DNA of 64,000 bases from IMG/VR virus record IMGVR_UViG_3300025161_000004, positions 182,769 through 246,768 of that record, one strand, 5' to 3'. Shown piece after piece: positions 5,021 to 55,662 of the stretch (its first letter is position 1; the number at the start of each line of letters is the position of its first letter). The notes under the pieces are model-generated. The model saw nothing but the letters and a program-made list of their open reading frames with translations, was not told where the DNA came from and ran no database searches. The position numbers and the translations under genes were made by a program.

Positions 5021-5091
5021 ATATAGCTTTCAAAAAAATAATTCATATTTATCACTTCTACTTAAAGATATAACTCACATAATAAGTATTG

Positions 5092-5166
5092 TCGAGTAGG
5101 CTGGATTCGAACCAGCGACCTCTTGCTCCCAAAGCAAGTGCGTTGACCTGACTACGCTACTACTCG
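5092..5166 (-). tRNA. tRNA-Pro(TGG)
   Basis: CTTGC-TTTGGGA-GCAAG; acceptor CGAGTAG/CTACTCG. Confidence 0.9.
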
Positions 5167-6892: not shown

Positions 6893-9412
6893 ATGTTAAA
6901 TATAAGAACATTATTATTCGAGGATGTCGCTAAATCGAAAAAAATCCTTAGAGAGTTAAATATACCTGAAAGTGACCCAAGATATCAAAAACTTAAGAAG
7001 TTATTAGAAAAAAATATTGGCTATCTGGGTTTGTTCACAACATTCATGTTCAAAAATAGAGTCGAATATGATGAATTGGTGAGTCTATACGATGAAATTA
7101 AGAGAGAACCTGCAAAATTTAAAAAATTACCTAAGCCACTGATTCAGTATAGTTCATATGTTGAATTACAAGATGCATTAACTGAAGTAGAGAAGGATAT
7201 TAAGTTTCAGAAAGCATATAAAATGCTTCCTAAAAATGTAAGAGAGTTAATCGACAATAATTTATCTAAAGATGTTAAAGATAAATTAATATCATTGTCA
7301 GATGACTTTATTAAAGCATATGATTTTCTTTCAAAATCACAAGGTAAATCTCCTGAACAAATTGAAAGTGATAAAAACGAATTAAATAAATTTTATTCTG
7401 GATTTGCAACTATTACTCGTAATCAAGGTGATGTTTCGGATATCTTGAACAAGATTGATCTTTTTGTGAAAAAATATGCAGACCAATTAAGTTTTGAAAA
7501 AAAAGTTGAGGAAATTAAAAACACTGATGGCGCAGAAATTATTACTGCAAATCCACAAACAAAAATTATTGTTGCAGCAATATACACATATAATGCATCA
7601 AAAAAACTAGGTAGCCCATATTGGTGTATTAGTTATTCTAATAGCCATTGGAATGAAAACACAAATGGTAGAATACAATTCTTTATTTGGAACTATAATT
7701 ACCCTGTATCAGATAAAAACAATCTTCTAGGCTTAACACTTAACACAGATTTTACACTAAATAGTTTTCAAAACTCATTAAATAAGCCAGTTAATGTTAA
7801 TAGTAGAGATGAATTAATTTCGTACTTAAGCCGCATAAATATTCCTGTCGAATTAATTCAAAATAAAATACAAAACTTTAATAGAGAAAGAAATAAATTT
7901 AGACTAGAAGAAATAGAAAGAAAAAATGTAAATGAGATAACACAACAAGATATATATTTTCTAATTCAGAATTATTATAGTACTCCAGAAGAGATAATTG
8001 ATTTCTTAGCTAAGAAATATGATAGAATGCCACGTTTTGCATTGCCGATTATTTTGGAAATGAGAACTGGTGATAAGAAAAAAATTATACCTGATATAAT
8101 TAGTAAGTTTAAAGGTAAATTTGTAGATGAGGATGACTTTTATTTCATGATTAATACTGATAATTTACGTAGAATCTATCCTGAAAGTGATCCTGAAAAA
8201 TTCAGAGATGCCATTATTGCAAAATTAACTAAAGAAAGAAATCCAAAAGATATCGATAAATCATTAGCGTTTTCATATATTATTCATAATTTAGGAAGAT
8301 TGTCGGATGCAATAAAGTATATTGGCGTAGATAAATTAAAACTATTCGATAATGATGAGATAATGTTGTTGCTTAATAGAGCAATAATTGCCGATGATAG
8401 TGAAACAATAAAATTACTTAATTCGGTCGGTAGATTACCAAATTTCAAACCAAAAGACATATTAGGATTAATATATAGTTTATATAATCAGGGATATAAG
8501 AATGCGTATCAGAAAATAGTATCGTTATTTGGTGATTCATTTGTTGATGAACTCGATAATAACGCACTATTTACAGTAATAATAAACTATCCTGATGAAA
8601 TCTTTATACCAATGTTTGAAAAAAATAGAGAAAAATTATTCGATAAATTAACTCCCTCACAAATACAAATAATTTTAAAATCAGAAAATGCCGAAAGACT
8701 TAAAAATTTTAAAGGGATAGAAAAAACTAATGAACCAGATCAGGAAGATGGTAGCGAATTTAAAGATGATAAGAGTAATTATCGAATATATAGTGAATTG
8801 ATAAGAGCCAGAACTAAAAGTGAAATAATTAGTATAATAAATAAGTATGGTAAAAGTGCCATACGTCAGTTAGAGCCTGCACAAGTAGTTAAGATACTAA
8901 AAAACACAACACAAAAAAAATTACTTGCAGATACTTTCGGCAAAGATTTAGTACAGAAAGCAATTAATGATCCAACAGGAGGATCAACACTTCAATTTTT
9001 ACTGAATAGAGAAAAATTATCAATAGATAATATTGCTGAAAGTAATCATGTGTTTGAATTATTTCCTACGCTAAAAAATAATGATCTTGATGATTTACTT
9101 AACAGCAAAGAATTTCAAGTTAACTTAGTTTATGATATAATAAATTTACGAAATATACATAATATAAACTATGAAAAATCAAGTCAAACAATAATTGATA
9201 AGTACGCTGATTATAGTTGGAATTCAAATGTTCAAGAATTCGAATTTGATTATGATTTTAATGGTAAAATAGTTTCTTTGAAAATATGGATTGACAATAA
9301 CGAACCAGTTTTTATGGATAGTACTGGTACAAGATTTAGAATGGACTGGTTGAATACAGAAAAGGGTTCATTCTATAAAAAGTTAATGTTATCAAAATTA
9401 AATTCAATATAA
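6893..9412 (+). CDS. Large hypothetical protein (possible virion internal protein)
   Basis: About 840 aa; start moved to ATG 6893 (MLNIRTLLFED); WCISY motif; GTATTTAT upstream. Confidence 0.8.
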   Translation: MLNIRTLLFEDVAKSKKILRELNIPESDPRYQKLKKLLEKNIGYLGLFTTFMFKNRVEYDELVSLYDEIKREPAKFKKLPKPLIQYSSYVELQDALTEVEKDIKFQKAYKMLPKNVRELIDNNLSKDVKDKLISLSDDFIKAYDFLSKSQGKSPEQIESDKNELNKFYSGFATITRNQGDVSDILNKIDLFVKKYADQLSFEKKVEEIKNTDGAEIITANPQTKIIVAAIYTYNASKKLGSPYWCISYSNSHWNENTNGRIQFFIWNYNYPVSDKNNLLGLTLNTDFTLNSFQNSLNKPVNVNSRDELISYLSRINIPVELIQNKIQNFNRERNKFRLEEIERKNVNEITQQDIYFLIQNYYSTPEEIIDFLAKKYDRMPRFALPIILEMRTGDKKKIIPDIISKFKGKFVDEDDFYFMINTDNLRRIYPESDPEKFRDAIIAKLTKERNPKDIDKSLAFSYIIHNLGRLSDAIKYIGVDKLKLFDNDEIMLLLNRAIIADDSETIKLLNSVGRLPNFKPKDILGLIYSLYNQGYKNAYQKIVSLFGDSFVDELDNNALFTVIINYPDEIFIPMFEKNREKLFDKLTPSQIQIILKSENAERLKNFKGIEKTNEPDQEDGSEFKDDKSNYRIYSELIRARTKSEIISIINKYGKSAIRQLEPAQVVKILKNTTQKKLLADTFGKDLVQKAINDPTGGSTLQFLLNREKLSIDNIAESNHVFELFPTLKNNDLDDLLNSKEFQVNLVYDIINLRNIHNINYEKSSQTIIDKYADYSWNSNVQEFEFDYDFNGKIVSLKIWIDNNEPVFMDSTGTRFRMDWLNTEKGSFYKKLMLSKLNSI

Positions 9413-10936: not shown

Positions 10937-11029
10937 ATGGAAAACTTAATATTAGATATGGCAGTCGTAGCAGAAGCGTTGGTTTTAGACGCTGAGTGGA
11001 ATTGTATTGGGTTTTCTATTAAGAGATAA
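10937..11029 (+). CDS. Leader peptide 2 (Glu/Leu/Asp/Met/Ala/Val/Trp sensing), 30 aa
   Basis: MENLILDMAVVAEALVLDAEWNCIGFSIKR; GGGTTTTCTATT antiterminator segment. Confidence 0.88.
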   Translation: MENLILDMAVVAEALVLDAEWNCIGFSIKR

Positions 11030-11053
11030 TTGAATTTAAAATTATACAAATAG

Positions 11054-11090
11054 AAAACCCGATCACAAAAAAGATCGGGTTTTTTGTTTT
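11054..11090 (+). terminator. Attenuator terminator of tRNA operon 2
   Basis: AAAACCCGATC-ACAAAAAA-GATCGGGTTTTTTGTTTT. Confidence 0.9.
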
Positions 11091-15121: not shown

Positions 15122-15865
15122 ATGGGAAAAAAAAGAATTATTTCTATTGGTGATATTCACGGAAGAACCTTTTGGAAGTCCATTAACATCATTGAATATG
15201 ATTATATTATATTTGTTGGTGACTATGTAGATTCGACCATATATGGTAATGAGCAAATATTAACTAATTTACTTGACATTATTGAATTAAAGAAAACTTA
15301 CCTAGATAAGGTAATACTATTATTAGGTAATCACGATATCCAATACATGTTTTTGAATGAAGGTTATGAATGTAGCGGTTACAGACCATCAATGGCATCA
15401 ACACTGAATCATATATTTACAGATAATAAAGAACTATTTCAAATGGCATTTCAGATAAACAATTATATCTGGACACATGCTGGTATTTCTGAAAAGTGGT
15501 ATAACCTTAATAAGGATGAAATCGATATTTTTTCTGATAAATTTAATTGTAAGAATTTATCCGACATATTTAATAGGATGATGTATACTAAAGAAAATAA
15601 ATTATTGCATCAGGTCGGAAAATTGCGTGGTGGTCTTTATCCTGCTGGTGGTATTACTTGGGCAGATCGTAATGAAACAAAATATGCATATCTTGTGGGT
15701 TATCATCAGATAGTAGGTCATACATCAATAGATGGAATTGAAAGATTTGGTGATGATAATAGTTCAATAACATATATTGATTGTCAATATAAGCTAGAGA
15801 ATTTAGAAAATTTTGACGATATTCGATTAGAAGACTATTTTTTAGTACTTGATTTGGCTGAATAA
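15122..15865 (+). CDS. Calcineurin-like metallophosphoesterase
   Basis: GDIHG, GDYVD, GNHD, HAG and GHT motifs. Confidence 0.9.
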   Translation: MGKKRIISIGDIHGRTFWKSINIIEYDYIIFVGDYVDSTIYGNEQILTNLLDIIELKKTYLDKVILLLGNHDIQYMFLNEGYECSGYRPSMASTLNHIFTDNKELFQMAFQINNYIWTHAGISEKWYNLNKDEIDIFSDKFNCKNLSDIFNRMMYTKENKLLHQVGKLRGGLYPAGGITWADRNETKYAYLVGYHQIVGHTSIDGIERFGDDNSSITYIDCQYKLENLENFDDIRLEDYFLVLDLAE

Positions 15866-16058: not shown

Positions 16059-17114
16059 GTGAAATTAAATAATGATATATTGAATAAATTGATTGATGAT
16101 GGTTATGTTATGGTTAATAATCATCCATCTCTACCTTTAAGAATTTATAATTATACTCGCAAAACTCAGTTTGAAAAATATTGGAACGAATATACATTAT
16201 TATGTCGTGGACTTATTCTTGATCATGATTTAAATGTTATCGCTAGACCTTTCATGAAGTTCTTCAATTATGAAGAACATAAACCAGAAGAAATTCCAAA
16301 TACAAATTTTGAAGTCTATGAAAAGGTAGATGGTTCATTGGGTATTATATTTAATTATGCAAATGAATGGCATATTGCCACCAGAGGTTCATTTGTATCA
16401 GAACAAGCTATTAGAGCTAAATCAATGCTTAGCAGATATAATATCGATGGTTTAGATTCTGAAAAGACTTATTTGGTTGAAATTATCTATCCAGAAAATC
16501 GTATTGTTGTTGATTATTTTGGTGAAGAAAAATTAGTGTTGTTAGCTGTTGTTGACATTAAAACAGGACATGATATGCCATATTCACATATGAAATATCA
16601 TACCTATATGCGTAAAATAGATTTCCCATTAATTAAATATTATGATGGTATTAATGATATTTTTGAATTAAGCAAACGTAACAATCAAAATGAAGAGGGT
16701 TACGTGTTAAGATATGAAAATGGATTTCGTGTAAAAATTAAATTTGAGAATTATTGTCGTCTACATGCAATCATTACCAATCTATCAACTAAAGATATTT
16801 GGAAATATTTACGTGATGGTAAAGATATTAATGAATTGCTTGATCGCACACCAGATGAATTTGATGATTGGGTAAGAAATGAAATGAAGTCATTAACTGA
16901 CAGGTATTTGGCAATTGAATCTGAAGCAAAATTAATATTTTCTAAAATTTATGTGGATGGTATGTCAAGAAAAGATTTTGCAATGAAAGCATTGAATGAA
17001 AATCATTCACCAATTTTATTTAAGATATTAGAAAATAAACCATATGATAGTATTATATGGAAAATGATTGAACCAAAATATTCAAAAGCATTCTTTAAAG
17101 AAGAAGGTAATTAG
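16059..17114 (+). CDS. rnlA: T4 Rnl1-like RNA ligase
   Basis: CRGLI, ARPFMKFFN, EKVDGS (motif I), ATRGSF, EGYV, RVKIK. Confidence 0.88.
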   Translation: MKLNNDILNKLIDDGYVMVNNHPSLPLRIYNYTRKTQFEKYWNEYTLLCRGLILDHDLNVIARPFMKFFNYEEHKPEEIPNTNFEVYEKVDGSLGIIFNYANEWHIATRGSFVSEQAIRAKSMLSRYNIDGLDSEKTYLVEIIYPENRIVVDYFGEEKLVLLAVVDIKTGHDMPYSHMKYHTYMRKIDFPLIKYYDGINDIFELSKRNNQNEEGYVLRYENGFRVKIKFENYCRLHAIITNLSTKDIWKYLRDGKDINELLDRTPDEFDDWVRNEMKSLTDRYLAIESEAKLIFSKIYVDGMSRKDFAMKALNENHSPILFKILENKPYDSIIWKMIEPKYSKAFFKEEGN

Positions 17115-23533: not shown

Positions 23534-24466
23534 ATGGAGGAAGTTAAAAAAAAATATGATATAGGGGTAATCATAGGACGTTTTCAAGTTCACGAATTAC
23601 ACGATGCACATAAGGGAATGATAGAAGAGGTTCTATCAAGACATGAAAAGGTAATTTTGTTTTTAGGGGTATCTCCTACACTTTCTACAAAAAGAAATCC
23701 ACTTGATTTCTTATCAAGAAAAGTAATGTTTGAAGAAGAATATGGTAATCGCATTTCTGTGATCTTACCATTATACGATAAAAAATCTGACTATGTTTGG
23801 TCTAAACAAGTCGATACTAAAATTCGTGAAGTATTTCCGCTTGGCTCTGTTGTTCTTTATGGGTCAAGAGATTCGTTTATCCCACATTATAAGGGAGAAT
23901 TTGATGTGATTGAATTAGTACCAAGTTCTTTAGTATCCGCAACTGAAATCAGAGAATCTGTATCTAAAAGAGTTGAGCGTAAAAAAGAATTTCGTGCAGG
24001 TGTTATTTATGCATGTTATAATACATTTGATTTGGTTCATCCTGTAGTCGATGTTGCAATTATGAATGATGATGAAACAATGGTTCTTCTTGGTAGAAAG
24101 AAAGATGAAACAGAATTTCGATTTATTGGTGGATTTGTTGATGTTACAGATGAATCTTTGGAACAGACAGTAAGACGTGAAGTATATGAGGAAACTGGAT
24201 TAGAAATTGACAATATTCAATACATCGCATCAATAAAGGTAAATGATTGGAGATATCGTTTAGATAAAGAACGTTCTGTTATGACATCATTTTTTAAGGC
24301 AAAGAAGATTTTTGGTGGTGGTTCTGAACAAGCCAAAGATGATATTGCTGAAGTAAAATGGTTTGACATTAATAAAATTAATGGAACTCAAATTGTTAGT
24401 GAGCATTTGAAACTACTCAACATCCTAAAAAATTTACTAAAAACCCAAAAGCTAAATAATTCTTAA
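23534..24466 (+). CDS. nadM: Bifunctional NMN adenylyltransferase / Nudix ADP-ribose pyrophosphatase
   Basis: GRFQVHELHDAH...RNPL...SAT, then Nudix box GG...EQTVRREVYEETG. Confidence 0.9.
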   Translation: MEEVKKKYDIGVIIGRFQVHELHDAHKGMIEEVLSRHEKVILFLGVSPTLSTKRNPLDFLSRKVMFEEEYGNRISVILPLYDKKSDYVWSKQVDTKIREVFPLGSVVLYGSRDSFIPHYKGEFDVIELVPSSLVSATEIRESVSKRVERKKEFRAGVIYACYNTFDLVHPVVDVAIMNDDETMVLLGRKKDETEFRFIGGFVDVTDESLEQTVRREVYEETGLEIDNIQYIASIKVNDWRYRLDKERSVMTSFFKAKKIFGGGSEQAKDDIAEVKWFDINKINGTQIVSEHLKLLNILKNLLKTQKLNNS

Positions 24467-24483
24467 CTAAAAATTATTAATTT

Positions 24484-25941
24484 ATGAAAACAATTAATTT
24501 AATCCCGAATTTAATTCTAAGAACTGATAGCTATAAACTTAGTCACTGGAAACAATATCCGAAAGGTATGACTAAAGTATATTCATATCTTGAAAGTAGA
24601 GGTGGTGCATATCCTGCAACACTATTCTTTGGATTGCAATATTTCTTAAAGCAATTAGAGGGTGTTGTGATTACCATGAAAGACGTTGAAGACGCTGATA
24701 AATTTTCAAAAGCACACTTTGGGAGTGATATCTTTAATAAAGAAGGTTGGAAATATATTGTTAAAGTACATGGTGGCAAACTCCCAATTCGTATTAAAGC
24801 GGTGAAAGAGGGTACATTAGTACCAACACGTAATGTTTTGATGACTATTGAAAATACTGATGAAAATTGTTTCTGGTTAACTAATGCAATGGAAACAATG
24901 CTAATGCGTATTTGGTATCCGATTACAATTGCAACAAATAGTTTTTATGCAAAACAAATGATAGCAAAATATTTAAAAACCAGTGCAAATGATTTAAATT
25001 CATTACCTTTTAAACTTCATGATTTCGGATATCGTGGTGTGTCAAGTGAAGAAAGTGCTGGTGTTGGTGGTATGGCTCACTTGGTAAATTTCATGGGTAC
25101 AGATACTCTTGCAGCAATTGTATATTCTAATGAATATTATAATGCTGGTGGTGTAAATGCATTTTCAGTTCCTGCATCTGAACACTCTGTGGCTTGTTCA
25201 TTTGGAAAAGAAAATGAAGAAGAATATTTCTTGAACATGCTTAATCAGTATCCTACAGGTATTGTATCGATAGTATCTGACACATATGATGTATTCAATT
25301 TTGTTGATTCTATGTCGAAGAAACATAAAAAGAAAATTCTTGAACGTCAAGGTACTACAGTATTTCGTCCTGATTCTGGGGATCCGATTGATGTTAATGT
25401 TAAATTAATCAACATCCTTTGGAATGTGTTTGGTGATGTAGGTTCTATTACTAAAACAGGACATAAATTATTACCACCACAAGTACGACTTATTCAAGGT
25501 GATGGTATTGATTTGAAAACATTAGATCAAATTCTTAAAACTGTTACTGACTTAGGATTCTCAGCTGAAAATTGGGTGTTCGGTTCTGGTGGTGGGCTTC
25601 TTCAAAAATTTGATCGTGATACATTGAAGTTTGCGATTAAAGCATCCTATGGTGAGAGAATAGTTGATGGAAATCGTCTAGAATTTGATATTCAGAAAGA
25701 CCCTATCACTTCATCTGGTAAGAAAAGTAAAGCAGGTAAATTGAAATTGGTAAAATCTCAATTAGATGGTGAGTTTTTCACTGTAACAAGTGAGCACCCA
25801 CATTTCGAAAAATTTAAAGATGAATTAGAGGTTGTATTTGAAAACGGTGAGATTAAGAGAACTCAGCAATTCGAAGAGATAAGAGTTCTTGCAAATTCAT
25901 TTATAAAAATTAATTCAGATGTAGAATATCAGAATCACTGA
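24484..25941 (+). CDS. nadV: Nicotinamide phosphoribosyltransferase
   Basis: TDSYKLSHW, LHDFGYRG, PASEHS, VSDTYD, RPDSG, QGDG, GSGGGLLQ. Confidence 0.95.
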   Translation: MKTINLIPNLILRTDSYKLSHWKQYPKGMTKVYSYLESRGGAYPATLFFGLQYFLKQLEGVVITMKDVEDADKFSKAHFGSDIFNKEGWKYIVKVHGGKLPIRIKAVKEGTLVPTRNVLMTIENTDENCFWLTNAMETMLMRIWYPITIATNSFYAKQMIAKYLKTSANDLNSLPFKLHDFGYRGVSSEESAGVGGMAHLVNFMGTDTLAAIVYSNEYYNAGGVNAFSVPASEHSVACSFGKENEEEYFLNMLNQYPTGIVSIVSDTYDVFNFVDSMSKKHKKKILERQGTTVFRPDSGDPIDVNVKLINILWNVFGDVGSITKTGHKLLPPQVRLIQGDGIDLKTLDQILKTVTDLGFSAENWVFGSGGGLLQKFDRDTLKFAIKASYGERIVDGNRLEFDIQKDPITSSGKKSKAGKLKLVKSQLDGEFFTVTSEHPHFEKFKDELEVVFENGEIKRTQQFEEIRVLANSFIKINSDVEYQNH

Positions 25942-25994
25942 ATTATAAAATAAGATAGTTCAATACTTAAATTTACAATATTAATAGAAGCAAT

Positions 25995-26924
25995 ATGATA
26001 AAAATTTTCCCACAATCGAATAGTCTTAAATTTACTGAGCAACTGGTAAATTCTAATTCTGTATTGGAAACTGGTAGAGCAAATTACTATAGTTTGGGTA
26101 AAATACATAAGACCAAATTTGCTAATGGTGAGATTACTGTTGTATTTGAAGAATCGGTTCGAAATGAATCGATTGTGATTGTATCACAACCAAAAACATA
26201 TGAAGATATTTTCGAACTTCTTGAGACAATTGATGCAGCAAGAAGATCTTCAGCGAAAGAAATCATCGGAGTGATACCATCATTACCACATTCAAGACAA
26301 GAAAGAAGAGAGAATGGTGTAAGAACAACAATCTCGGCAAGATTAATTGCTGATATATTACAAGTTGCTGGTCTTGACAGATTAATAACTATGGATGTTC
26401 ATACTACCGCCATTGAAGGATTTTATAAAATACCATTTGATAATATTGATCCTTTTGATAGTATTCTAAAAAAAATAAAAACATTGAATTTGCAAAACCC
26501 TACAATTGTATCACCAGATTTTGGCGGTATGAAACGAGCAAAAAAATATGCTAATAAGTTAGGGTATAATATAGCATTCATTAGTAAGGAAAGATTAAAA
26601 GCAAATGAAGTTGAAAGTATGACATTAATTGGATCAGTAAAAGATTCGGATGTCATTATTGTTGATGATATGATTGATACTGGTGCTACTATATTGAAAG
26701 GGCTTGATTTGCTTAAAGAGAATGGTGCAAAGAACTTTTATGTATTTGCTACACATGGTGTATTTTCTAATGACGCTATTAATAAGTTTGCAACTAATCA
26801 TAATTTTCCACATGTTTACATAACAAATACAATACCTGTAGATAATCATAGTAATTTTGTTAACATTAAAGAAATTAATGTTATTTCCGAATTTGATAAG
26901 GCATTAAGAAAAATTTTTATATAA
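25995..26924 (+). CDS. prs: Ribose-phosphate pyrophosphokinase family protein
   Basis: FANGE, SRQERR, DVH, SPDFGG, IVDDMIDTGAT, THGVFS. Confidence 0.9.
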   Translation: MIKIFPQSNSLKFTEQLVNSNSVLETGRANYYSLGKIHKTKFANGEITVVFEESVRNESIVIVSQPKTYEDIFELLETIDAARRSSAKEIIGVIPSLPHSRQERRENGVRTTISARLIADILQVAGLDRLITMDVHTTAIEGFYKIPFDNIDPFDSILKKIKTLNLQNPTIVSPDFGGMKRAKKYANKLGYNIAFISKERLKANEVESMTLIGSVKDSDVIIVDDMIDTGATILKGLDLLKENGAKNFYVFATHGVFSNDAINKFATNHNFPHVYITNTIPVDNHSNFVNIKEINVISEFDKALRKIFI

Positions 26925-27337
26925 TGTGCATAATAAAAGCAATCGATAAAGCACTAAAAAATAAAGAAAAAAAGGGTTGGGATAAGATTTATTTTTATTT
27001 TGACATTCATGAGACAATTCTTTATCCCGATTATAATAATGAAGAACCTTTAAAATTTTACAAACACGCTAAAGAAGTTTTACAATATCTTTCTAATAGA
27101 AGTGATATTGAATTGGGTTTATTTACTTGTTCGTATCCACAAGAAATAAAGCGTTATAGAAAATTTTTTATGGATAATGGTATTATTTTTAGGTATGCAA
27201 ATAAAAATCCTGATGTTGAAGATACTGCATATGGATATTATGAAGATAAACCCTATTTTAATGTATTATTTGAAGATAAAGCAGGTTTTGATGCTGAAAA
27301 TGATTGGATATTAGTAAAAAATTATTTTGGTATTTAA
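26924..27337 (+). CDS. Hypothetical HAD-like protein
   Basis: FDIHETI...KPYFNVLFEDKAGFD. Confidence 0.6.
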   Translation: MCIIKAIDKALKNKEKKGWDKIYFYFDIHETILYPDYNNEEPLKFYKHAKEVLQYLSNRSDIELGLFTCSYPQEIKRYRKFFMDNGIIFRYANKNPDVEDTAYGYYEDKPYFNVLFEDKAGFDAENDWILVKNYFGI

Positions 27338-27358
27338 TTTTTTTATTATATTTGTGAT

Positions 27359-27973
27359 ATGAGAAAAAAGTACATAACAACAATTTTGTTAGTTACGACT
27401 CTCGTATCAACAGCTAACAATAAAAAAATAGATTTACATGCCCTTAATGATTCTTCAAAAAAGGGTATGATTAATTCTAATTTAATACTTGAAGAACCTA
27501 AAGTGGTATGTCCTGAAGATATTGTTATTAGGGATTTTCACGTATTACATCCAGCTTTTAGAAATAAAGTAGTATTATTATTTATTGAAGCTAAAAAACA
27601 GGGTATTGATTTAGTTATTTCGGAAACATATAGAACACCTGAAAGGCAAAATATGTTATATAATAAAAAATTAACTAAAGTTAAGTCAGGTAAATCAAAA
27701 CATCAATATGGTTTAGCAATTGATCTTATACCAGTGATAAATAATAAATCACAGGCAAATAATGATGAAGTATTAAAACGTGTTGGAATTATTGGTGAAA
27801 AATTAGGATTAAAATGGGGTGGTAGATGGAAATTCTATGATCCTGTCCATTTTGAATATAAATGGAATATTAATGATGCATTGAGTGGTAGATTACCTGA
27901 AATACCCGATACATTAATTATTCCAGATACTGATTTTTTCTACAAAAATATTAAAAGAACAAATATAGAATAA
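27359..27973 (+). CDS. M15-family peptidoglycan peptidase with N-terminal signal
   Basis: ETYRTPERQ...SKHQYGLAIDL...WGG.W...D..HFE. Confidence 0.85.
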   Translation: MRKKYITTILLVTTLVSTANNKKIDLHALNDSSKKGMINSNLILEEPKVVCPEDIVIRDFHVLHPAFRNKVVLLFIEAKKQGIDLVISETYRTPERQNMLYNKKLTKVKSGKSKHQYGLAIDLIPVINNKSQANNDEVLKRVGIIGEKLGLKWGGRWKFYDPVHFEYKWNINDALSGRLPEIPDTLIIPDTDFFYKNIKRTNIE

Positions 27974-28437
27974 TGATTGAGTATAAACCACCATACGACA
28001 TTCGCACCATTAATTTATCCAATAAATCAGTATTTCTTGCAGGCACAATTGAAATGGGTAAATCAATTGATTGGCAAAGAGAAATTGTTGAATTGTTAAA
28101 AGATGAAGATATAATTGTTTTAAATCCAAGAAGAGATGATTGGGATTCATCATGGGTTCAAAGTATCGAGAACCCGCAATTTAAAGAACAAGTTGAATGG
28201 GAATTGTATGGTATAGAAAATGTAACGAAGGTAATAATGTGTTTTATGCCTAATACATTATCACCAATATCTATGCTTGAATTGGGATTATGTTTGAAAA
28301 GGGGTAATGTCATAGTTTATTGTCCAAAAGATTTTTGGAGAAAGGGAAATATAGATGTAACTTGCTCAGTGTATGGTATTCCAGTGTTTGATGACTTCGA
28401 TCTTTTTAAAGATAAGATTAAATCAATTTTAAAATAA
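27973..28437 (+). CDS. Nucleoside 2-deoxyribosyltransferase-like protein
   Basis: VFLAGTIEMG...WQ...NPRRDDW...QVEWEL...SPISMLELG. Confidence 0.85.
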   Translation: MIEYKPPYDIRTINLSNKSVFLAGTIEMGKSIDWQREIVELLKDEDIIVLNPRRDDWDSSWVQSIENPQFKEQVEWELYGIENVTKVIMCFMPNTLSPISMLELGLCLKRGNVIVYCPKDFWRKGNIDVTCSVYGIPVFDDFDLFKDKIKSILK

Positions 28438-28442
28438 CAAAT

Positions 28443-29111
28443 ATGAAAGTTGCTGTTGATGCAGTGGTATTTGCTTATATTAATAAAGAATTGAATATTC
28501 TTCTTATTGAAAGAGCATTTGAACCATTTAAGGGTAAATTATCTTTGGCTGGTGGTTTTATTAATGAAAATGAGACTGCAGATCAGGCAGTTATTAGAAA
28601 ATTAAAAGAAGAAACTAATGTGAAATTGAACTATCTTGAACAACTATTTACATTCACAGACGTGGATCGTGATCCAAGAGAGAGAATTATATCTATAGCA
28701 TATTATGCTTTAATTAATCCAACAAATCATAATTTAGAAGCTAATATTCATGCTAAAGACGTTAACTGGTATCCAGTTAGTAAACTGGAATATTTACCAA
28801 TAGCTTTTGATCACTATAAGATTATAAACTATGGGATAACACGTTTAAAGAATAAGGTGATTTATGAACCAATAGGGTTTGAATTATTACCAAAATATTT
28901 TTCAATGAGTGATTTGTATGATTTATACTGTGCAATACTTGGTAATAATTTAGATAGAAGAAATTTTATTAAAAAAATAACCAGTTTTGGTTTATTAAAA
29001 AAAACTAAATTTAAAACAAAAGGTCATATAGGTAGACGTGCTCAGTTATTTGAGTTCGATCAAAAAAAATATGAAAAACTTAAACTGAATGGATTTAAGT
29101 TTGATATTTGA
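28443..29111 (+). CDS. nrtR: NrtR-family Nudix/wHTH regulator
   Basis: VAVDAVVF...LAGGF...EETN...RDPRER...AFDH; C-terminal LDRRNF...GRRAQLF wHTH. Confidence 0.9.
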   Translation: MKVAVDAVVFAYINKELNILLIERAFEPFKGKLSLAGGFINENETADQAVIRKLKEETNVKLNYLEQLFTFTDVDRDPRERIISIAYYALINPTNHNLEANIHAKDVNWYPVSKLEYLPIAFDHYKIINYGITRLKNKVIYEPIGFELLPKYFSMSDLYDLYCAILGNNLDRRNFIKKITSFGLLKKTKFKTKGHIGRRAQLFEFDQKKYEKLKLNGFKFDI

Positions 29112-29393: not shown

Positions 29394-30308
29394 ATGGAAA
29401 ATTTAAAAATTATATTAACAATAGGGATACCAGCGTCAGGTAAATCTACATGGTCAAAAGAATTTGTACGCATAAACAATAACTATGTCCGTGTTTGCCG
29501 TGATGATTATCGTTTAATGTTAGCTCAATCTAATATGCTCAATCCTAAGGGCGAAAAATTAGTTAGCCGATTAGTTAAGAGTGCTATTTCTAATGCAATC
29601 GATTCTAAATATAATGTTATTGTTGATCAAACAAATGTTAATATTAAATATTTGGATGAGTTGGTTGATTTTTGTCAAAAATTGGCTGATGTTGAGTTTA
29701 AAATATTTGATATACCAATAGAATTAGCTATCGAAAGAGATAAGAAAAGAGGTTCTGCTATGGTTGGTGAGGAAATTATAAGAAAAATGTATAAAAATTA
29801 TTTAGATTTATGTTATTCTTTTAATTATGATTTTTCTTATAGGAAGAAAAAATCAAGAATCGTCACAAACATTGATTGGAAACCAAAAAATGAATTACCT
29901 AATGCTGTTATTTTTGATATTGATGGTACTCTTGCACATATAAATGGTAGAAGGGATTACTTTGATTGGGATCAAGTCGATAAAGATTTAGTTGATGAAC
30001 GTGTCCGTCAAACATTAGATGTACATAGATATGCTGGTTACCATATTATTATCGTAACTGGACGTGATGGTTCTTGTGAGAAATTAACTAAGATGTGGTT
30101 AGCAAAAAATAAAATACACTATAATCATTTCTTTATTAGACCTGCAGGTGATTTTCGTAAAGACACTGTCATTAAAAAAGAAATATTCGATAAGTATATT
30201 AATGGAAAATTTAACGTGCTTAGTGTTTATGAAGACAGAGATCGAGTAGTTTCTATGTGGAGAGAAATGGGATTAAAGTGTTTTCAAGTTATTGATGGTA
30301 ATTATTAA
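29394..30308 (+). CDS. pseT: Polynucleotide kinase/3'-phosphatase (T4 Pnkp-like)
   Basis: GIPASGKST P-loop, RDD; HAD DIDGT, TGR, D.VIKKE, EDR. Confidence 0.92.
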   Translation: MENLKIILTIGIPASGKSTWSKEFVRINNNYVRVCRDDYRLMLAQSNMLNPKGEKLVSRLVKSAISNAIDSKYNVIVDQTNVNIKYLDELVDFCQKLADVEFKIFDIPIELAIERDKKRGSAMVGEEIIRKMYKNYLDLCYSFNYDFSYRKKKSRIVTNIDWKPKNELPNAVIFDIDGTLAHINGRRDYFDWDQVDKDLVDERVRQTLDVHRYAGYHIIIVTGRDGSCEKLTKMWLAKNKIHYNHFFIRPAGDFRKDTVIKKEIFDKYINGKFNVLSVYEDRDRVVSMWREMGLKCFQVIDGNY

Positions 30309-32026: not shown

Positions 32027-32527
32027 ATGAAAAATCATGGTAAAAAAAGATTATTTGAAATGATGGGTAGATTAAACCCCGATTTTAAGAGAGATAATTA
32101 TCATGAAAATGATGGTACTTATTTTAAGCCTAAATTGAAGGATATTATTAAAATGGCAACCGAAATTGATTCCATGTTAAAGAATTCTGATGATCTTGAT
32201 GCTTGGATACAAGATAAGCTAAGTATTTCTTACCATAATATGGATGCCGTTTTGGGATATTTTAAAAGAAAAATGGATAATGATTTTGTGAAAAAAACTA
32301 ATTTGATTACTGGCGGTAGAGCAGATAAACTAACAGTGGATGATATCGCCAAAAAACATAATGTATCTGTCGATTTAATTAAGCATCAGTTAGAGAAAGG
32401 TAAGAGAGTTGAGATGGAACACACTAATAATATTGAAATGGCTGAAGAAATTGCCATGGATCATCTTTATGAAATACCAGATTATTATGAACGATTAGCT
32501 AAGATTGAAAAAGATACTAAAAAATAA
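32027..32527 (+). CDS. DUF5661-like protein
   Basis: GGRAD...IAKKH...G..VEMEHT...AEEIAMDHL.E.PDYY..L. Confidence 0.75.
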   Translation: MKNHGKKRLFEMMGRLNPDFKRDNYHENDGTYFKPKLKDIIKMATEIDSMLKNSDDLDAWIQDKLSISYHNMDAVLGYFKRKMDNDFVKKTNLITGGRADKLTVDDIAKKHNVSVDLIKHQLEKGKRVEMEHTNNIEMAEEIAMDHLYEIPDYYERLAKIEKDTKK

Positions 32528-32565
32528 TTTTTTAAAAAAAAAATAAGTTTTTTTTGATTTAAAAG

Positions 32566-32583
32566 TATTTAGTACTATATTTG
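32566..32583 (+). promoter_or_regulatory. Promoter of tRNA operon 3
   Basis: GTATTTA, then TATATTTG at 32576-32583. Confidence 0.7.
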
Positions 32584-32599
32584 CAAAATATTTAAGGGA

Positions 32600-32668
32600 A
32601 TGATAACTATTAAGAAATATTATTATAAAAAGTCTTCAAAAGTGAAGATCAGTAATACTATATCTTAA
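32600..32668 (+). CDS. Leader peptide 3 (Lys/Tyr sensing), 22 aa
   Basis: MITIKKYYYKKSSKVKISNTIS; GTGAAGATCAG antiterminator segment. Confidence 0.9.
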   Translation: MITIKKYYYKKSSKVKISNTIS

Positions 32669-32685
32669 CAGTAATATAAAAAAAT

Positions 32686-32728
32686 AAAAACCCTGATCTT
32701 CACAAAAAGATCAGGGTTTTTATTTTTT
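32686..32728 (+). terminator. Attenuator terminator of tRNA operon 3
   Basis: AAAAACCCTGATCTT-CACAAA-AAGATCAGGGTTTTTATTTTTT, abutting tRNA-Tyr. Confidence 0.92.
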
Positions 32729-32812
32729 GGGAGTGCGCTAACGTTGGAGTGTTAGGCTTGTCTGTAAAACAAGTGCCTGTTGGCTTAGTAGGTTCGAATC
32801 CTACCACTCCCA
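32729..32812 (+). tRNA. tRNA-Tyr(GTA)
   Basis: CTTGT-CTGTAAA-ACAAG; long variable arm. Confidence 0.9.
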
Positions 32813-32833
32813 CAATAAACCATATAGAAAAAA

Positions 32834-32866
32834 ATGAAAGCTAAACAAAGTAAACGAAAACACTAA
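32834..32866 (+). CDS. Lys-rich mini-ORF before tRNA-Lys, 10 aa
   Basis: MKAKQSKRKH with four AAA codons. Confidence 0.55.
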   Translation: MKAKQSKRKH

Positions 32867-32869
32867 TTT

Positions 32870-32899
32870 AATCACACCTCATGACTAAGAGGTGTGATT
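32870..32899 (+). other. 11-bp hairpin between the mini-ORF and tRNA-Lys
   Basis: AATCACACCTC-ATGACTAA-GAGGTGTGATT, no U tract. Confidence 0.75.
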
Positions 32900-32906
32900 G
32901 GTCAAT

Positions 32907-32993
32907 CCCCTCTTAGCTCTAATTGGCGAGTCGAAAGACGAGAGCTTCTGACTTTTAATCAGAAGGTTGCTGGTTCGAATCCAGCAGAGGGGA
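32907..32993 (+). tRNA. tRNA-Lys(TTT) with expanded D loop
   Basis: TCTGA-CTTTTAA-TCAGA; 22-nt D loop containing a GTC-GAAA-GAC hairpin. Confidence 0.85.
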
Positions 32994-33404
32994 CAAAAAA
33001 AATATTTTTTATTATAATTATCTTTGATAACCATTGTAAGACATATAGTATTTTATACCAGTTCTTATTTACGTAAAAGTTATATAGTATTGAATATTAT
33101 TCAAATTAATGTGTTTTAGTGTTTAGCTTTTTTATTTATATTTGTACTTATAGAAATAAGTTATTATGAATAAAGTGATTGAAAAAGCAAAAACGATAAT
33201 TATATCATTAATTTCATATGAGGTTGCAAGTAAAAAATTTGGTTTTAGATTATATTCTAAAAAGTTTATCGATAATCAAGTTAATCGATACACCCATATC
33301 TAAAGGGATGATTATATTATTTTTTTCGTGTCTTGAATTATCTAATATATTCAATTGACAAATTGAAACTACTGATATATATTTGTTTTTTTAGTTTAAA
33401 ATCT

Positions 33405-33680: not shown

Positions 33681-33849
33681 CTGATAATCATTACTATTTT
33701 TTTAGGATAAAAATATTTATCTATTTTTTTTTGATATTGGTTGACGATATTAGTATTTATCCATAAGATTGTAAAAAATATTCAAAAAATATTCTGATGC
33801 TGTCAGTATCAGAAACAAATTATTTTATTAAAAAATTATATAATCAAAA

Positions 33850-39387: not shown

Positions 39388-39465
39388 ATGAAAAATATAA
39401 TCACAATTACCCAAATTACAAGGATAAGAGGTACAAAAACCTCAAGTAATGGGTTTATTGTGTGA
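39388..39465 (+). CDS. Leader peptide 4 (Ile/Thr/Arg sensing), 25 aa
   Basis: MKNIITITQITRIRGTKTSSNGFIV; GGGTTTATTGTGT antiterminator segment. Confidence 0.88.
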   Translation: MKNIITITQITRIRGTKTSSNGFIV

Positions 39466-39493
39466 AATTTTTTAGTTAATATCTTTAACACAT

Positions 39494-39524
39494 AAACCCG
39501 ATAAAAAATCGGGTTTTTTTGTTT
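39494..39524 (+). terminator. Attenuator terminator of tRNA operon 4
   Basis: AAACCCGAT-AAAAA-ATCGGGTTTTTTTGTTT. Confidence 0.88.
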
Positions 39525-42299: not shown

Positions 42300-42319
42300 C
42301 GTATTTATGTGTATATTTG
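42300..42319 (+). promoter_or_regulatory. Promoter of tRNA operon 5
   Basis: CGTATTTAT, then TATATTTG at 42312-42319. Confidence 0.7.
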
Positions 42320-42338: not shown

Positions 42339-42458
42339 ATGAAATTTTTAAATCTAAATAATAATCCTTCGAACCTGAATAGTAATTTTATATCAGGGAA
42401 TATTTTTCTTGGTACTTGTCAAGAGAAGTCGGGTTATTCTTTAGATTTTGGTGGATGA
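42339..42458 (+). CDS. Leader peptide 5 (Phe/Leu/Asn/Ser/Ile/Gly/Cys sensing), 39 aa
   Basis: MKFLNLNNNPSNLNSNFISGNIFLGTCQEKSGYSLDFGG; GTCGGGTTATTCTT antiterminator segment. Confidence 0.88.
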   Translation: MKFLNLNNNPSNLNSNFISGNIFLGTCQEKSGYSLDFGG

Positions 42459-42485
42459 TAAACTAAAACAACTAAAGAAATCAAG

Positions 42486-42516
42486 AAAACCCGACACAAA
42501 AGTCGGGTTTTTTATT
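42486..42516 (+). terminator. Attenuator terminator of tRNA operon 5
   Basis: AAAACCCGAC-ACAAAA-GTCGGGTTTTTTATT. Confidence 0.9.
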
Positions 42517-43039: not shown

Positions 43040-43110
43040 GCCCGAATGGTGTAAATAGTAGCATACTTGCTACGCAGCAAGAGGTGTTGGTTCAAGTCCA
43101 ACTTCGGGCC
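43040..43110 (+). pseudogene. Atypical tRNA with a 6-nt anticodon loop (Arg ACG-like)
   Basis: CTTGC-TACGCA-GCAAG; D loop lacks GG; acceptor and T stems intact. Confidence 0.5.
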
Positions 43111-46040: not shown

Positions 46041-47328
<1,288 letters not shown>

Positions 47329-47565: not shown

Positions 47566-47690
47566 GACATCGTCTTATAACAAGACAGTTTGTAAGTTTT
47601 GATGTTAAACCACCATTAATGGACTTCAAAATATTAAATTTAGCTATATGAAATTATCTTGGGACAAACTTGATGTGTTAGCAAAAAAGT

Positions 47691-47764
47691 GTAACCAAGA
47701 TGATTAAATTTTCGTATAATACAACAAATACGATCCATTAGCATAGTGGTTAATGTAGGACTCT
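47691..47764 (+). repeat. Second copy of the direct repeat (intact tRNA 5' half)
   Basis: See 45964-46036. Confidence 0.85.
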
Positions 47765-47803
47765 CTAAAAGTCTTGAGGTGGGTTCGATTCCCACATGGA
47801 TCA
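47732..47803 (+). tRNA. Amber suppressor tRNA(CTA)
   Basis: GATCCAT/ATGGATC acceptor; GGACT-CTCTAAA-AGTCT; GTGGG-TTCGATT-CCCAC. Confidence 0.88.
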
Positions 47804-47932
47804 CAAAAATTTATTAAATATGATCTTAAAGATATATCACAACACCAATCGGAAGGTTGAATATGAACTGTGGGCTGTGGTGTTTTTATTTAAAAATCAT
47901 AAAAAATAACTTAACAATTTGAAACTTTTTAA

Positions 47933-48586: not shown

Positions 48587-48659
48587 GCAGGGATAGCCAA
48601 GAGGTAAGGCATGACACAGCAAATGTCACATTCAGGTGGTTCGAGTCCCCTTCCCTGCT
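48587..48659 (+). tRNA. tRNA-Cys(GCA)-like with A33
   Basis: TGACA-CAGCAAA-TGTCA; U73. Confidence 0.65.
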
Positions 48660-54933: not shown

Positions 54934-55662
54934 ATGGGAAAAAATGATAGTCTTAGTGACAGGATGAAGCGTTATGAGGATACGTCACGCATATTCCTTT
55001 TAAGAAGGATGTATACCATAATACGTATTGATGGTAAGGCATTTCACACATACACTAAAGAATTAAAGAAACCGTTCGACCATGACTTAATTTATGATCT
55101 GGACGAAACAGCAAAATTCCTTTGTAGAAATATTCAGGGTTGTAAATTGGCGTATATGCAATCGGATGAAATTTCATTGGTTCTCACTGATTTTGATGAA
55201 TTAAATACTTCTGCTTGGTTTGATAATAACATTCAAAAAATTGTATCAGTGTCTGCAAGTATGGCTACATCAAAATTTAATCAAATGAGAGTGCTGAGAA
55301 ATAAAGAATTTTTAAATAAACTAGCATTTTTCGATGCAAGAGCATTTCAAGTCCCAACTAAAACTGAGGTAATTAATTATTTGATTTGGAGACAAAATGA
55401 TGCGATAAGAAATAGTGTACTATCAGTAGCACAATCATTTTACTCACATGAAGAGTTACAAGGTAAAAACATAAATCAGATGTTAAATATGATTTCCAAG
55501 ATAGGTCTTAACTGGGATAATTTACCATCTGGATTGAAAAGAGGTAGATTAATCTATAAAAGACAAGAGAATAAACGTAGTTTTTGGGATTTATTGTCAG
55601 TTACTCCATCACTAAAAGAGGATAAAGAACTAGTTAATAAAATATTACCAAATAATTTTTGA
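54934..55662 (+). CDS. thg1: tRNA-His guanylyltransferase / Thg1-like protein
   Basis: RMKRYE...IRIDGKAFH...QSDEIS...QKIVSVSAS...FDAR...WRQNDA.RNS. Confidence 0.93.
   Translation: MGKNDSLSDRMKRYEDTSRIFLLRRMYTIIRIDGKAFHTYTKELKKPFDHDLIYDLDETAKFLCRNIQGCKLAYMQSDEISLVLTDFDELNTSAWFDNNIQKIVSVSASMATSKFNQMRVLRNKEFLNKLAFFDARAFQVPTKTEVINYLIWRQNDAIRNSVLSVAQSFYSHEELQGKNINQMLNMISKIGLNWDNLPSGLKRGRLIYKRQENKRSFWDLLSVTPSLKEDKELVNKILPNNF

Follow-up and report, generated by a model that had tools for sequence, protein, structure and literature searches.

Why would a huge bacteriophage place a very short, Lys/Tyr-rich reading frame and a strong transcription terminator directly in front of its own tRNA genes? 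The question is raised by a stretch of 64,000 nucleotides (hereafter the window; positions 182,769 to 246,768 of the IMG/VR virus record IMGVR_UViG_3300025161_000004), in which the initial annotation proposed a KKYYYKK leader acting as an attenuator over tRNA-Tyr and tRNA-Lys. We re-examined the locus, and the sequence observations proved correct in every detail. The interpretation was only partly supported, in that the attenuator assignment is upheld, whereas the suggestion that Tyr and Lys have a dedicated sensor because they are frequently attacked by defence nucleases is not specifically supported.

Architecture of the tRNA-Tyr/tRNA-Lys unit

The unit comprises the following features, all on the plus strand.

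32553-32583: predicted promoter of Bacteroidota type, with TTTG (32553-56), a 19-nt spacer containing GTATTTA (32565-71), and TAtaTTTG (32576-83)
32600-32668: leader ORF of 22 codons, MITIKKYYYKKSSKVKISNTIS, with a TAA stop, reading ATG ATA ACT ATT AAG AAA TAT TAT TAT AAA AAG TCT TCA AAA GTG AAG ATC AGT AAT ACT ATA TCT TAA
32612-32632: putative regulatory codons 5-11, AAG AAA TAT TAT TAT AAA AAG (KKYYYKK), which also form the 5' strand (segment 1, extending to 32638) of the anti-antiterminator hairpin
32642-32652: segment 2, GTGAAGATCAG, able to pair with either segment 1 or segment 3
32693-32703: segment 3, CTGATCTTCAC, the 5' arm plus first loop bases of the terminator
32679-32728: intrinsic terminator, core stem 32689-32700/32707-32718, with an A-tract upstream and a U-tract at 32719-32728
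32729-32812: tRNA-Tyr(GUA) with a long variable region, starting at the base after the U-tract
32834-32866: 10-codon mini-ORF, MKAKQSKRKH, in the inter-tRNA spacer
32870-32899: 11-bp hairpin without a U-tract, in the inter-tRNA spacer
32907-32993: tRNA-Lys(UUU) with an unusual 22-nt D-loop

All four RNA segments of a classical attenuator are present. Segments 2 and 3 are perfect reverse complements (11/11), and the duplex between the leader and the terminator arm has a predicted energy of -18.2 kcal/mol, which 0 of 1000 shuffled leaders reach. The terminator stem, AACCCTGATCTT/AAGATCAGGGTT, has 12 core pairs (up to 22-23 with the A/U extension), and region 32590-32730 folds at -43.6 kcal/mol (z = -8.9). 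The alternative partner of segment 2 lies in segment 1 (GUCUUCA/UGAAGAU, 32632-38 with 32643-49, extended over the Tyr codons). When the leader ORF is folded alone, segment 2 pairs with the K/Y block at -12.7 kcal/mol (z = -3.3). Since the U-tract abuts tRNA-Tyr, no promoter fits between them, and the tRNAs can only be made by read-through.

The exact motif GTATTTA-N4-TAnnTTTG occurs only three times in the 64 kb, each time in front of a tRNA leader (A, C and E of the five leaders lettered A to E), and with up to one mismatch there are 7 matches against 0.79 expected. The same motif precedes the leaders of relatives. TTTG/TAnnTTTG is the consensus of Bacteroides promoters. The implied 5' UTR is only about 10 nt, and there is no convincing Shine-Dalgarno sequence at a usual distance, which fits Bacteroidota, although this is inferred.

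The Rfam tRNA model (RF00005) aligns over its full length with 32729-32812 (39.7 bits), with anticodon loop CUGUAAA, i.e. Tyr(GUA), a gene that ARAGORN misses at default settings. ARAGORN calls the second gene (32907-32993/4) Leu(gag), or Arg(tct) with an intron, but these readings were rejected because the folds have mismatched stems and lack U33. The cloverleaf with perfect 4- and 5-bp stems, parsed by eye, has anticodon loop CUUUUAA, i.e. Lys(UUU). It aligns by its anticodon arm with the Lys tRNAs that relatives carry at the same position, and Lys is the amino acid otherwise missing from the tRNA set of the window. The Lys assignment therefore holds, with the caveat of the unusual D-loop and the by-eye parsing.

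Leader composition tracks the downstream tRNAs

To test whether the leader codons match the tRNAs that follow, we compared every leader with every tRNA cluster of the window. In the Tyr/Lys leader, 9 of 21 codons are read by the downstream Tyr/Lys tRNAs against 15% expected (P = 2e-3), with no enrichment for any other cluster. Four more units in the window have leaders spelled in the codons of their own downstream tRNAs, and together the five main tRNA operons cover all 20 amino acids. Each of the five leaders is enriched only for codons read by its own tRNAs (P = 1e-3, 5e-3, 2e-3, 1e-3 and 3e-6), and the summed -log10 P is 16.4 on the diagonal against 11.4 for the best other assignment. Leu codons split by isoacceptor, such that all four in leader B are UUR (tRNAs UAA and CAA follow), while leader E has CUA, CUG and CUU (tRNAs UAG and AAG follow) plus two non-cognate UUA. 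For each of the other four units, again, 0 of 1000 shuffles reach the antiterminator duplex. The device is, however, not found throughout the window: we looked for a leader with in-frame TAG codons before the suppressor tRNA at 47732, and for a leader before the two Cys tRNAs (48587, 48666), and found neither leader nor terminator.

Natural swaps point the same way. In the 635-kb phage LR745206.1, Tyr tRNAs sit with Glu tRNAs and the leader reads YESYYEE, a Gln-only operon (Gln x3) has MTTTQQIQQQQ, and PVNPQPQDQDP precedes Pro/Asp tRNAs, though antiterminator scores are weaker for some units of this phage. In L070, one of the related loci, an Arg-richer leader precedes four Arg tRNAs.

Conservation and covariation in related phages

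The unit recurs before Tyr/Lys tRNAs in 16 further distinct phage contigs, which keep a K/Y leader with an intact homologous ORF, an antiterminator and a terminator. Fifteen of these are next to the ribonucleotide reductase gene, and one came from a genome scan, whose single hit is a 363-kb scaffold binned as Candidatus Paceibacterota, probably a mis-binned phage. The leader is alignable, whereas the linker between stop codon and terminator is not. Segment 2 starts 9 nt after the last K codon in the window. By the boundaries of the scored duplexes, the gap is 8 nt here and 6-10 nt (mostly 8-9) in the 15 of 16 scored loci whose K/Y block was captured; it was not captured in the related locus L085, where the antiterminator score is also weaker. 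The leader ORF alone folds into a hairpin pairing the K/Y codons with segment 2 in 15 of 15 loci (z = -2.3 to -6.2). The spacer elements between the two tRNAs are retained in L070, where the mini-ORF reads MNTLKLKRKP and the hairpin has a different stem sequence.

RNAalifold on a MAFFT alignment of 16 units recovered only the terminator, because the linker is unalignable and the 3' arms are out of register. Pairing was therefore scored per sequence and by cross-pairing between classes. There are three unrelated antiterminator/terminator sequence classes, GTGAAGATCAG, GAATCGGG and AAGACTGG, and each leader pairs with its own arm and not with the arms of the other classes. This covariation is at class level: a 20-mer of the leader scanned against viral contigs returned only the source contig and that of L070, so that the window's own class has just two members and base-pair-level covariation within the 11-bp helix could not be counted. 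Against metagenome contigs, the same 20-mer returned the source contig plus 31 unrelated A/T-rich matches.

Megablast of 25 kb around the site against GenBank phages found only a 48-nt match. Relatives of the upstream DUF5661 protein (32027-32524) were found in 17 other viral contigs, none of which has tRNAs nearby, so that gene is not part of the unit.

Comparison with known regulatory systems

A covariance-model search of the whole window at Rfam gathering thresholds returned only tRNAs, and a permissive scan of 32540-33040 returned only tRNA and sub-threshold hairpin look-alikes. The element thus matches none of the curated leader families (His_leader, Trp_leader, Thr_leader, Leu_leader, Leu/Phe leader and others), nor the T-box model RF00230, even at E <= 1.

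In anatomy, the closest systems are the leader-peptide attenuators of enterobacterial amino-acid biosynthesis operons (trpL, hisL, pheL, thrL, leuL, ilvL). These share a short promoter-proximal ORF with a run of regulatory codons held in segment 1, mutually exclusive 1:2, 2:3 and 3:4 helices, and an intrinsic terminator before the regulated genes; mixed-amino-acid leaders also exist (ilv: Leu/Val/Ile; thr: Thr/Ile). Here, however, the regulated genes are tRNA genes rather than enzymes, so the product would feed back directly on the signal. The element is also phage-encoded and multiplexed, with five units covering 20 amino acids and leaders carrying up to about 8 different cognate amino acids, and segment 2 lies inside the ORF rather than after the stop codon. 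The pheM leader of E. coli pheST likewise controls a component of the translation apparatus in response to decoding of its cognate codons, but it controls a synthetase, senses one amino acid, and is chromosomal. In T-box riboswitches, a tRNA-status signal also decides between a terminator and an antiterminator upstream of translation-related genes, but uncharged tRNA is bound directly, with a single specifier codon and conserved Stem I/T-box motifs and without a ribosome; none of these features is present here.

Phage-encoded tRNA-Lys and tRNA-Tyr can replace host tRNAs destroyed by defence nucleases. The background invoked by the initial annotation is in the literature: PARIS AriB cleaves tRNA-Lys, against which T5 tRNA-Lys acts (PMC11464382), and retron Ec78 PtuAB targets tRNA-Tyr, against which T5-family tRNA-Tyr acts (PMC11555353). 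In those systems no demand sensor in front of the tRNA genes has been described, whereas here every main tRNA operon has one, not only those of attacked tRNAs. Together with the grouping of Tyr with Glu in LR745206.1, this suggests a design for general tRNA supply control, not a Tyr/Lys speciality. A defence-related use remains possible, as PNKP, an Rnl1-type ligase and a Thg1-like enzyme are encoded in the same window; in T4, the pair of PNKP and Rnl1-type ligase repairs cleaved tRNA-Lys.

Proposed mechanism

The best reading of these data is a classical four-segment, ribosome-mediated transcription attenuator that couples tRNA synthesis to decoding speed at the cognate codons, and we regard this as likely. 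The sequence architecture, its statistical significance, its conservation and covariation, and the tracking of leader composition to tRNA identity are established by the analysis. Translation of the leader, transcription-translation coupling in the uncultured (probably Bacteroidota) host, the direction of the response, including any increase in read-through when the cognate charged tRNA is limiting, and the physiological trigger are inferred from sequence.

In this model, transcription starts about 10 nt before the leader ORF. If Lys-tRNA and Tyr-tRNA are plentiful, the ribosome would run through KKYYYKK and over segment 2 to the stop codon; segment 2 would be covered, or re-pair with the K/Y-codon strand, the terminator (segments 3:4) would form, and RNA polymerase would stop at the U-tract, one base before tRNA-Tyr. 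In some relatives segment 2 ends up to 26 nt before the stop codon, where a ribosome parked at the stop would not cover it, and termination would there rely on re-formation of the 1:2 hairpin. If decoding of AAA/AAG or UAU is slow, because host tRNA-Lys or tRNA-Tyr is scarce, cleaved, uncharged, or outstripped by the demand of this 29% G+C phage, the ribosome would stall on the K/Y codons. It would then hold segment 1 and leave segment 2, starting 8-9 nt downstream, free to pair with segment 3; the edge of a ribosome lies at about +12 to +15 from the P site, and the conserved spacing is compatible with such uncovering. The terminator could not form, polymerase would read into both tRNA genes, and RNase P would release the tRNAs. 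The new tRNAs would relieve the stall, closing a negative feedback loop. Such an attenuator cannot tell tRNA loss from amino-acid starvation. Across the five units, the supply of tRNAs for all 20 amino acids would be demand-regulated.

Alternative explanations

The alternative that survives best, though still unlikely, is a translation-dependent gate without codon specificity, responding to general translation failure or loss of coupling, with the K/Y codons incidental. Any ribosome arrest inside the first half of the leader would free segment 2, and the leader is A/T-rich like the genome. However, leader composition tracks the downstream tRNA set in every unit examined (five in the window, five in LR745206.1, and two conserved families in relatives), including the isoacceptor-level matching of Leu codons and the Tyr/Glu leader.

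Direct RNA-tRNA sensing, with the codon run acting as specifier sequences without a ribosome, is very unlikely. The terminator/antiterminator choice and the tRNA-related signal recall T-boxes, but in addition to the absence of a family match, Stem I and T-box bulge, the codons are always in frame with a conserved ATG and stop, many different codons are present rather than one specifier, and the 6-10 nt spacing fits a ribosome edge.

It is equally doubtful that the small ORFs encode functional micropeptides, for example ones acting on synthetases or tRNAs, with the RNA structures secondary. Part of the peptide outside the K/Y block is conserved, such as the (I)GNT(M/I)S tail, but this tail is encoded by nucleotides that form segment 2 and the helix with the Tyr codons, peptides of different operons share nothing except matching their tRNAs, and lengths are 16-39 residues with no domain.

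An ordinary terminator of the upstream gene (32027-32527) plus a chance small ORF, with the tRNAs silent or made by leaky read-through, could be entertained because the terminator has flanking A- and T-tracts like a bidirectional terminator and lies 150 nt after a gene, but a dedicated promoter motif lies between gene and leader, the antiterminator pairs 11/11 with 0 of 1000 shuffles reaching it, and this explanation is already contradicted by the comparative data, with conservation of ORF, spacing and co-varying pairing across 16 further contigs whose upstream genes differ.

Discussion

Phage tRNA genes are usually explained by codon-usage compensation, or more recently as replacements for host tRNAs destroyed by defence nucleases or by the phage itself, and how their expression is controlled has hardly been studied. 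Literature searches, which did not reach most subscription-journal papers, found no description of leader-peptide attenuation of tRNA genes. A leader-peptide attenuator in this position would be, to our knowledge, the first case of ribosome-mediated attenuation regulating tRNA synthesis, giving a direct feedback loop in which the product removes the signal.

A broader reading, possible but tentative, is that huge phages of this clade carry a codon-resolved tRNA homeostat, in which every tRNA operon would be gated by a leader peptide written in the codons of the tRNAs it controls. The phage would thus measure, amino acid by amino acid, where host decoding fails and answer with exactly those tRNAs. 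On this reading, the system would also act as an inducible counter-defence against anticodon nucleases, delivering structurally unusual tRNAs that may resist them (for example tRNA-Lys with a 22-nt D-loop here and with a long extra arm in relatives) alongside a PNKP/Rnl1/Thg1-like tRNA repair kit.

Attenuation of this kind would show that huge phages monitor translation codon by codon. It would offer a compact, reprogrammable sensor, in that changing the leader codons should change which tRNA shortage is sensed. It also gives a simple genomic signature, leader composition equal to the downstream tRNA set, which can delimit tRNA operons, help assign identities to aberrant tRNAs, and let one ask which tRNA shortages phages anticipate. 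The debate over why phages carry tRNAs thereby becomes experimentally approachable, through what induces read-through.

Architecture of the Tyr/Lys unit

The 64-kb window is part of a 246,768-bp viral contig, IMGVR_UViG_3300025161_000004 (also Ga0209381_1000103), with 28.8% G+C. The initial annotation had described a Lys/Tyr codon run in a leader reading frame, an 11-nt complementarity between leader and terminator, and a terminator U-tract abutting tRNA-Tyr, and on re-examination the sequence proved to be exactly as described. The elements of the unit are as follows.

32553-32583 (+), promoter of the Bacteroides type: TTTG, then 19 nt, then TAtaTTTG, with an embedded GTATTTA
32600-32668 (+), leader ORF of 22 codons encoding MITIKKYYYKKSSKVKISNTIS, with AAG AAA TAT TAT TAT AAA AAG as codons 5-11
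32642-32652 (+), segment 2, GTGAAGATCAG
32693-32703 (+), segment 3, CTGATCTTCAC, the perfect reverse complement of segment 2
32679-32728 (+), terminator with core stem AACCCTGATCTT / AAGATCAGGGTT and a U-tract ending at 32728
32729-32812 (+), tRNA-Tyr(GUA)
32834-32899 (+), inter-tRNA mini-ORF and hairpin
32907-32993 (+), tRNA-Lys(UUU)

The promoter matches the Bacteroides-type -33/-7 consensus. The exact composite motif GTATTTA-N4-TAnnTTTG occurs only three times in 64 kb (32565-32583, 42301-42319 and, on the minus strand, 5493-5475), each time in front of a tRNA leader, and a one-mismatch copy lies at 33753-33771, just upstream of the ribonucleotide reductase gene.

Region 32590-32730 folds at -43.6 kcal/mol (z = -8.9). 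The leader RNA alone folds into an anti-antiterminator, in which the K/Y codons and GUCUUCA (segment 1) pair with UGAAGAU and the following AAUACUAU (segment 2 region), at -12.7 kcal/mol (z = -3.3). Segment 2 can instead pair 11/11 with segment 3, which comprises the 5' arm plus loop of the terminator, forming an antiterminator of -18.2 kcal/mol that 0 of 1000 shuffled leaders reach. The terminator U-tract abuts tRNA-Tyr, so that no promoter fits in between and the two tRNAs can only be made by read-through.

The Rfam tRNA model matches 32729-32812 over its full length (39.7 bits) with anticodon loop CUGUAAA, identifying tRNA-Tyr(GUA), although ARAGORN misses this gene at default settings. The second gene is called Leu(gag) by ARAGORN, but that fold has mismatched stems and no U33. 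An alternative cloverleaf has perfect stems, anticodon loop CUUUUAA and a 22-nt D-loop containing a GUC-GAAA-GAC mini-hairpin, and it aligns by its anticodon arm with the Lys tRNAs that relatives carry at the same place; we therefore read this gene as tRNA-Lys(UUU). With Tyr and Lys added, the tRNAs of the window cover all 20 amino acids.

The tRNA-Lys genes of this clade are structurally odd. Whereas that of the window has the 22-nt D-loop, relatives have a long extra (variable) arm, giving 83-91 nt (in the loci from related contigs designated L070, 1501-1591; L072, 1070-1153; L075, 503-589; L077, 1492-1576 and 1641-1723; L083, 1398-1481; and L094, 990-1074), a feature that could conceivably bear on recognition by anticodon nucleases or by the synthetase. 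Between tRNA-Tyr and tRNA-Lys (32834-32899) lie a 10-codon Lys-rich mini-ORF (MKAKQSKRKH) and an 11-bp hairpin without a U-tract. L070 keeps both, with a different hairpin sequence, and the region could be a processing site or a second control step for tRNA-Lys.

Five cognate leaders in the window

Reading the other tRNA clusters of the window showed the same device four more times, at 5457-5320 (-), 10937-11089 (+), 39388-39516 (+) and 42339-42513 (+). Each lies before a tRNA operon and is written in the codons of that operon, and together with the Tyr/Lys unit they cover all 20 amino acids.

Table. Leader, terminator and downstream tRNAs of the five units in the window.
Unit; leader; terminator; downstream tRNAs
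A (minus strand); 5457-5374, MKMDVFIVPQPKHQLQ...; 5348-5320; Pro, Pro, Gln, His, Gln
B; 10937-11029, MENLILDMAVVAEALVLDAEW...; 11048-11089; Trp, Glu, Glu, Val, Ala, Asp x3, Leu(UAA), Leu(CAA), Met
C (the Tyr/Lys unit); 32600-32668, MITIKKYYYKK...; 32679-32728; Tyr, Lys
D; 39388-39465, MKNIITITQITRIRGTKT...; 39494-39516; Thr, Arg, Arg, Ile
E; 42339-42458, MKFLNLNNNPSNLNSNFISGNIFLGTC...; 42484-42513; Phe, Ile, Ser, Gly, Gly, Ser, Asn, Leu(UAG), Leu(AAG), Cys

Each unit has an antiterminator that no shuffle reaches (0 of 1000 each). A codon-level matrix of leaders against clusters showed each leader to be enriched only for codons read by its own downstream anticodons (P = 1e-3, 5e-3, 2e-3, 1e-3 and 3e-6), and the true leader-to-cluster assignment scores 16.4 summed -log10 P, against 11.4 for the next best of the 120 permutations. 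Leu codons split by isoacceptor: all four in leader B are UUR, while leader E has CUA, CUG and CUU, plus two non-cognate UUA. Five of the roughly nine strong terminators in the window belong to these units.

The suppressor tRNA(CUA) at 47732-47804 and two Cys tRNAs at 48587 and 48666 have no such leader. The suppressor tRNA is followed by two ORFs, starting at 47973 and 48323, that carry an in-frame TAG at codon 4 and codon 3, respectively, suggesting that TAG is read as sense in at least some genes; none of the five leaders ends in TAG. In addition, tRNA-like genes with abnormal anticodon loops lie inside attenuator-controlled clusters (window 43040-43110; L099, 1061-1134; L087, 9029-9100), for which ARAGORN reports 2-nt or 4-nt anticodons (cg, gtag, aaga), while Rfam gives 49.7 bits for the window copy.

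Conservation and covariation in related contigs

Relatives of the adjacent ribonucleotide reductase were retrieved from IMG/VR, and many contigs, from 6 to 357 kb, keep a Tyr/Lys tRNA cluster 1.5-2.5 kb upstream of that gene. In 15 distinct ones the cluster is preceded by an intact K/Y-rich leader, an antiterminator and a terminator, for example MRTFGTYYYGKKSYKKQLIGIGNTMTKGKR. A sixteenth instance came from a scan of genomes. A GTDB genome scaffold (L137; JBAZIW010000001.1, 362,763 bp, labelled MAG Candidatus Paceibacterota) carries the same Tyr/Lys leader unit, with a leader at 6844 (MRTFGTYYYGKKSYKKQLIGIGNTMTKGKI) followed by a terminator and Lys, Lys, Tyr, Lys and Tyr tRNAs, and is probably a huge phage binned as a bacterium. 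The closest relative, L070, has MKTVKKYYYKKSSEVKIGNTMS, and its differences in the helices are G-U compatible.

The leader is alignable across the set, while the stop-to-terminator linker (17-52 nt) is not. The gap between the last K/Y codon and segment 2 is 6-10 nt, mostly 8-9, in the 15 of 16 scored loci whose K/Y block was captured, which is what one expects if the edge of a stalled ribosome must just clear segment 2. Three unrelated helix sequences occur, GTGAAGATCAG, GAATCGGG and AAGACTGG, and each leader pairs with its own terminator arm and not with the arms of the other classes; the window leader, for example, scores -16.9 kcal/mol with its own arm and -2.2 to -6.3 with foreign arms. 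The K/Y codons pair with segment 2 in 15 of 15 loci.

Downstream of the reductase, relatives carry a second conserved unit, whose leader is rich in T, S, R, I, G, F, C and N and precedes Thr/Cys/Asn/Phe/Ser/Arg/Gly/Ile tRNAs. In several relatives (L032, 1472-1621; L046, 1445-1584; L055, 1336-1476; L075, 335-502; L078, 1420-1564; L137, about 7000-7130) the terminator is separated from the first tRNA by about 150 nt of short repeats (GCATAAAAACGCATA twice, and ATGAAAAACAG-like three to four times), which may be an additional regulatory or promoter region that the window lacks. Two relatives (L057, 1700-1965, and L082, 880-1122) lack the K/Y leader and have instead a shared element (CGCAATCGTGAGATAAAAAAAC...CAGTGGAAGGTGCTGACAGGCA) and a tRNA-like gene with an insertion in the anticodon arm, upstream of their Tyr/Lys tRNAs.

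Leaders follow regrouped tRNAs in a 635-kb phage

The published 634,780-bp uncultured phage LR745206.1 groups its tRNAs differently, and the leaders follow. Five units were found in its region 360000-409999 (L101), with leaders at 5030-5116, 6082-6165, 27701-27817, 46704-46799 and 47639-47689 of that region, including YESYYEE before Glu/Tyr and QQIQQQQ before three Gln tRNAs.

Table. Leaders and downstream tRNAs in LR745206.1.
Leader; downstream tRNAs
MNTITNIASYESYYEEGN...; Glu, Glu, Glu, Tyr, Glu, Tyr
...ISIAVIGNGAGAI...; Ile, Gly, Met, Gly, Gly, Ala
MTTMNLNMTMNLTLNVVNITL...R; Asn, Arg, Leu, Val, Ile, Thr, Met set
...PVNPQPQDQDP...; Pro, Asp x4, Pro
MTTTQQIQQQQINQTD; three Gln

Tyr is paired with Lys in one lineage and with Glu in another, and the leader reads K/Y or E/Y accordingly. 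These natural swaps provide the strongest argument that the codons are the sensed feature.

Comparison with known attenuators

All testable defining features of a leader-peptide attenuator are present in the element, whereas it does not match any Rfam leader family or the T-box model. Searches of the literature, in a collection that is incomplete, found no report of leader-peptide attenuation of tRNA genes in phages or bacteria. The mechanism class is known, while the target (tRNA genes), the direct product feedback, the multiplexing over all amino acids and the phage setting are, as far as these searches go, new.

Implications for tRNA supply and counter-defence

Our analysis strongly supports, at the computational level and with high confidence, the interpretation of the unit as an attenuator, as the initial annotation had proposed. 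Its further proposal, that tRNA-Tyr and tRNA-Lys, as two frequently attacked tRNAs, have their own dedicated sensor, is only partly supported. The background cited for it is correct, in that PARIS AriB cleaves tRNA-Lys (PMC11464382) and retron Ec78 PtuAB targets tRNA-Tyr (PMC11555353). However, the sensor is not special to these two tRNAs, given that every main tRNA operon has one and that the partner of Tyr varies.

A role in counter-defence nevertheless remains plausible. The same window encodes a putative tRNA/RNA repair toolkit. This comprises the following genes.

29394-30305 (+), polynucleotide kinase-phosphatase (PF25109, 157 bits)
16059-17111 (+), Rnl1-type RNA ligase (PF09511, 61 bits)
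15122-15862 (+), metallophosphoesterase next to the ligase
54934-55659 (+), Thg1-like tRNA-His guanylyltransferase family protein

In T4, the kinase-phosphatase and the ligase repair cleaved tRNA-Lys. The window also carries an NAD-related block at 23534-29108 (+), comprising a NUDIX protein, nicotinamide phosphoribosyltransferase, PRPP synthetase, a nucleoside 2-deoxyribosyltransferase-like protein and a NUDIX-NrtR-like regulator, which resembles phage NAD+ reconstitution pathways.

The design is that of the classical trp/his/thr attenuators. In this model, with ample charged tRNA the ribosome would pass the regulatory codons and move over segment 2, so that the terminator forms and polymerase stops one base before tRNA-Tyr. 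When Lys or Tyr decoding is slow, the ribosome would instead stall on segment 1, segment 2 would capture segment 3, and polymerase would read into the tRNA genes. The architecture, its statistical support, its conservation and the tracking of leader codons to downstream tRNAs are established by the sequence analysis, whereas translation of the leader, coupling in the host and the sign of the response are inferred. Such an attenuator would respond equally to codon-usage mismatch, to decay of host tRNA, or to amino-acid starvation, and, because its products are the tRNAs that read the stalling codons, the loop would be self-limiting.
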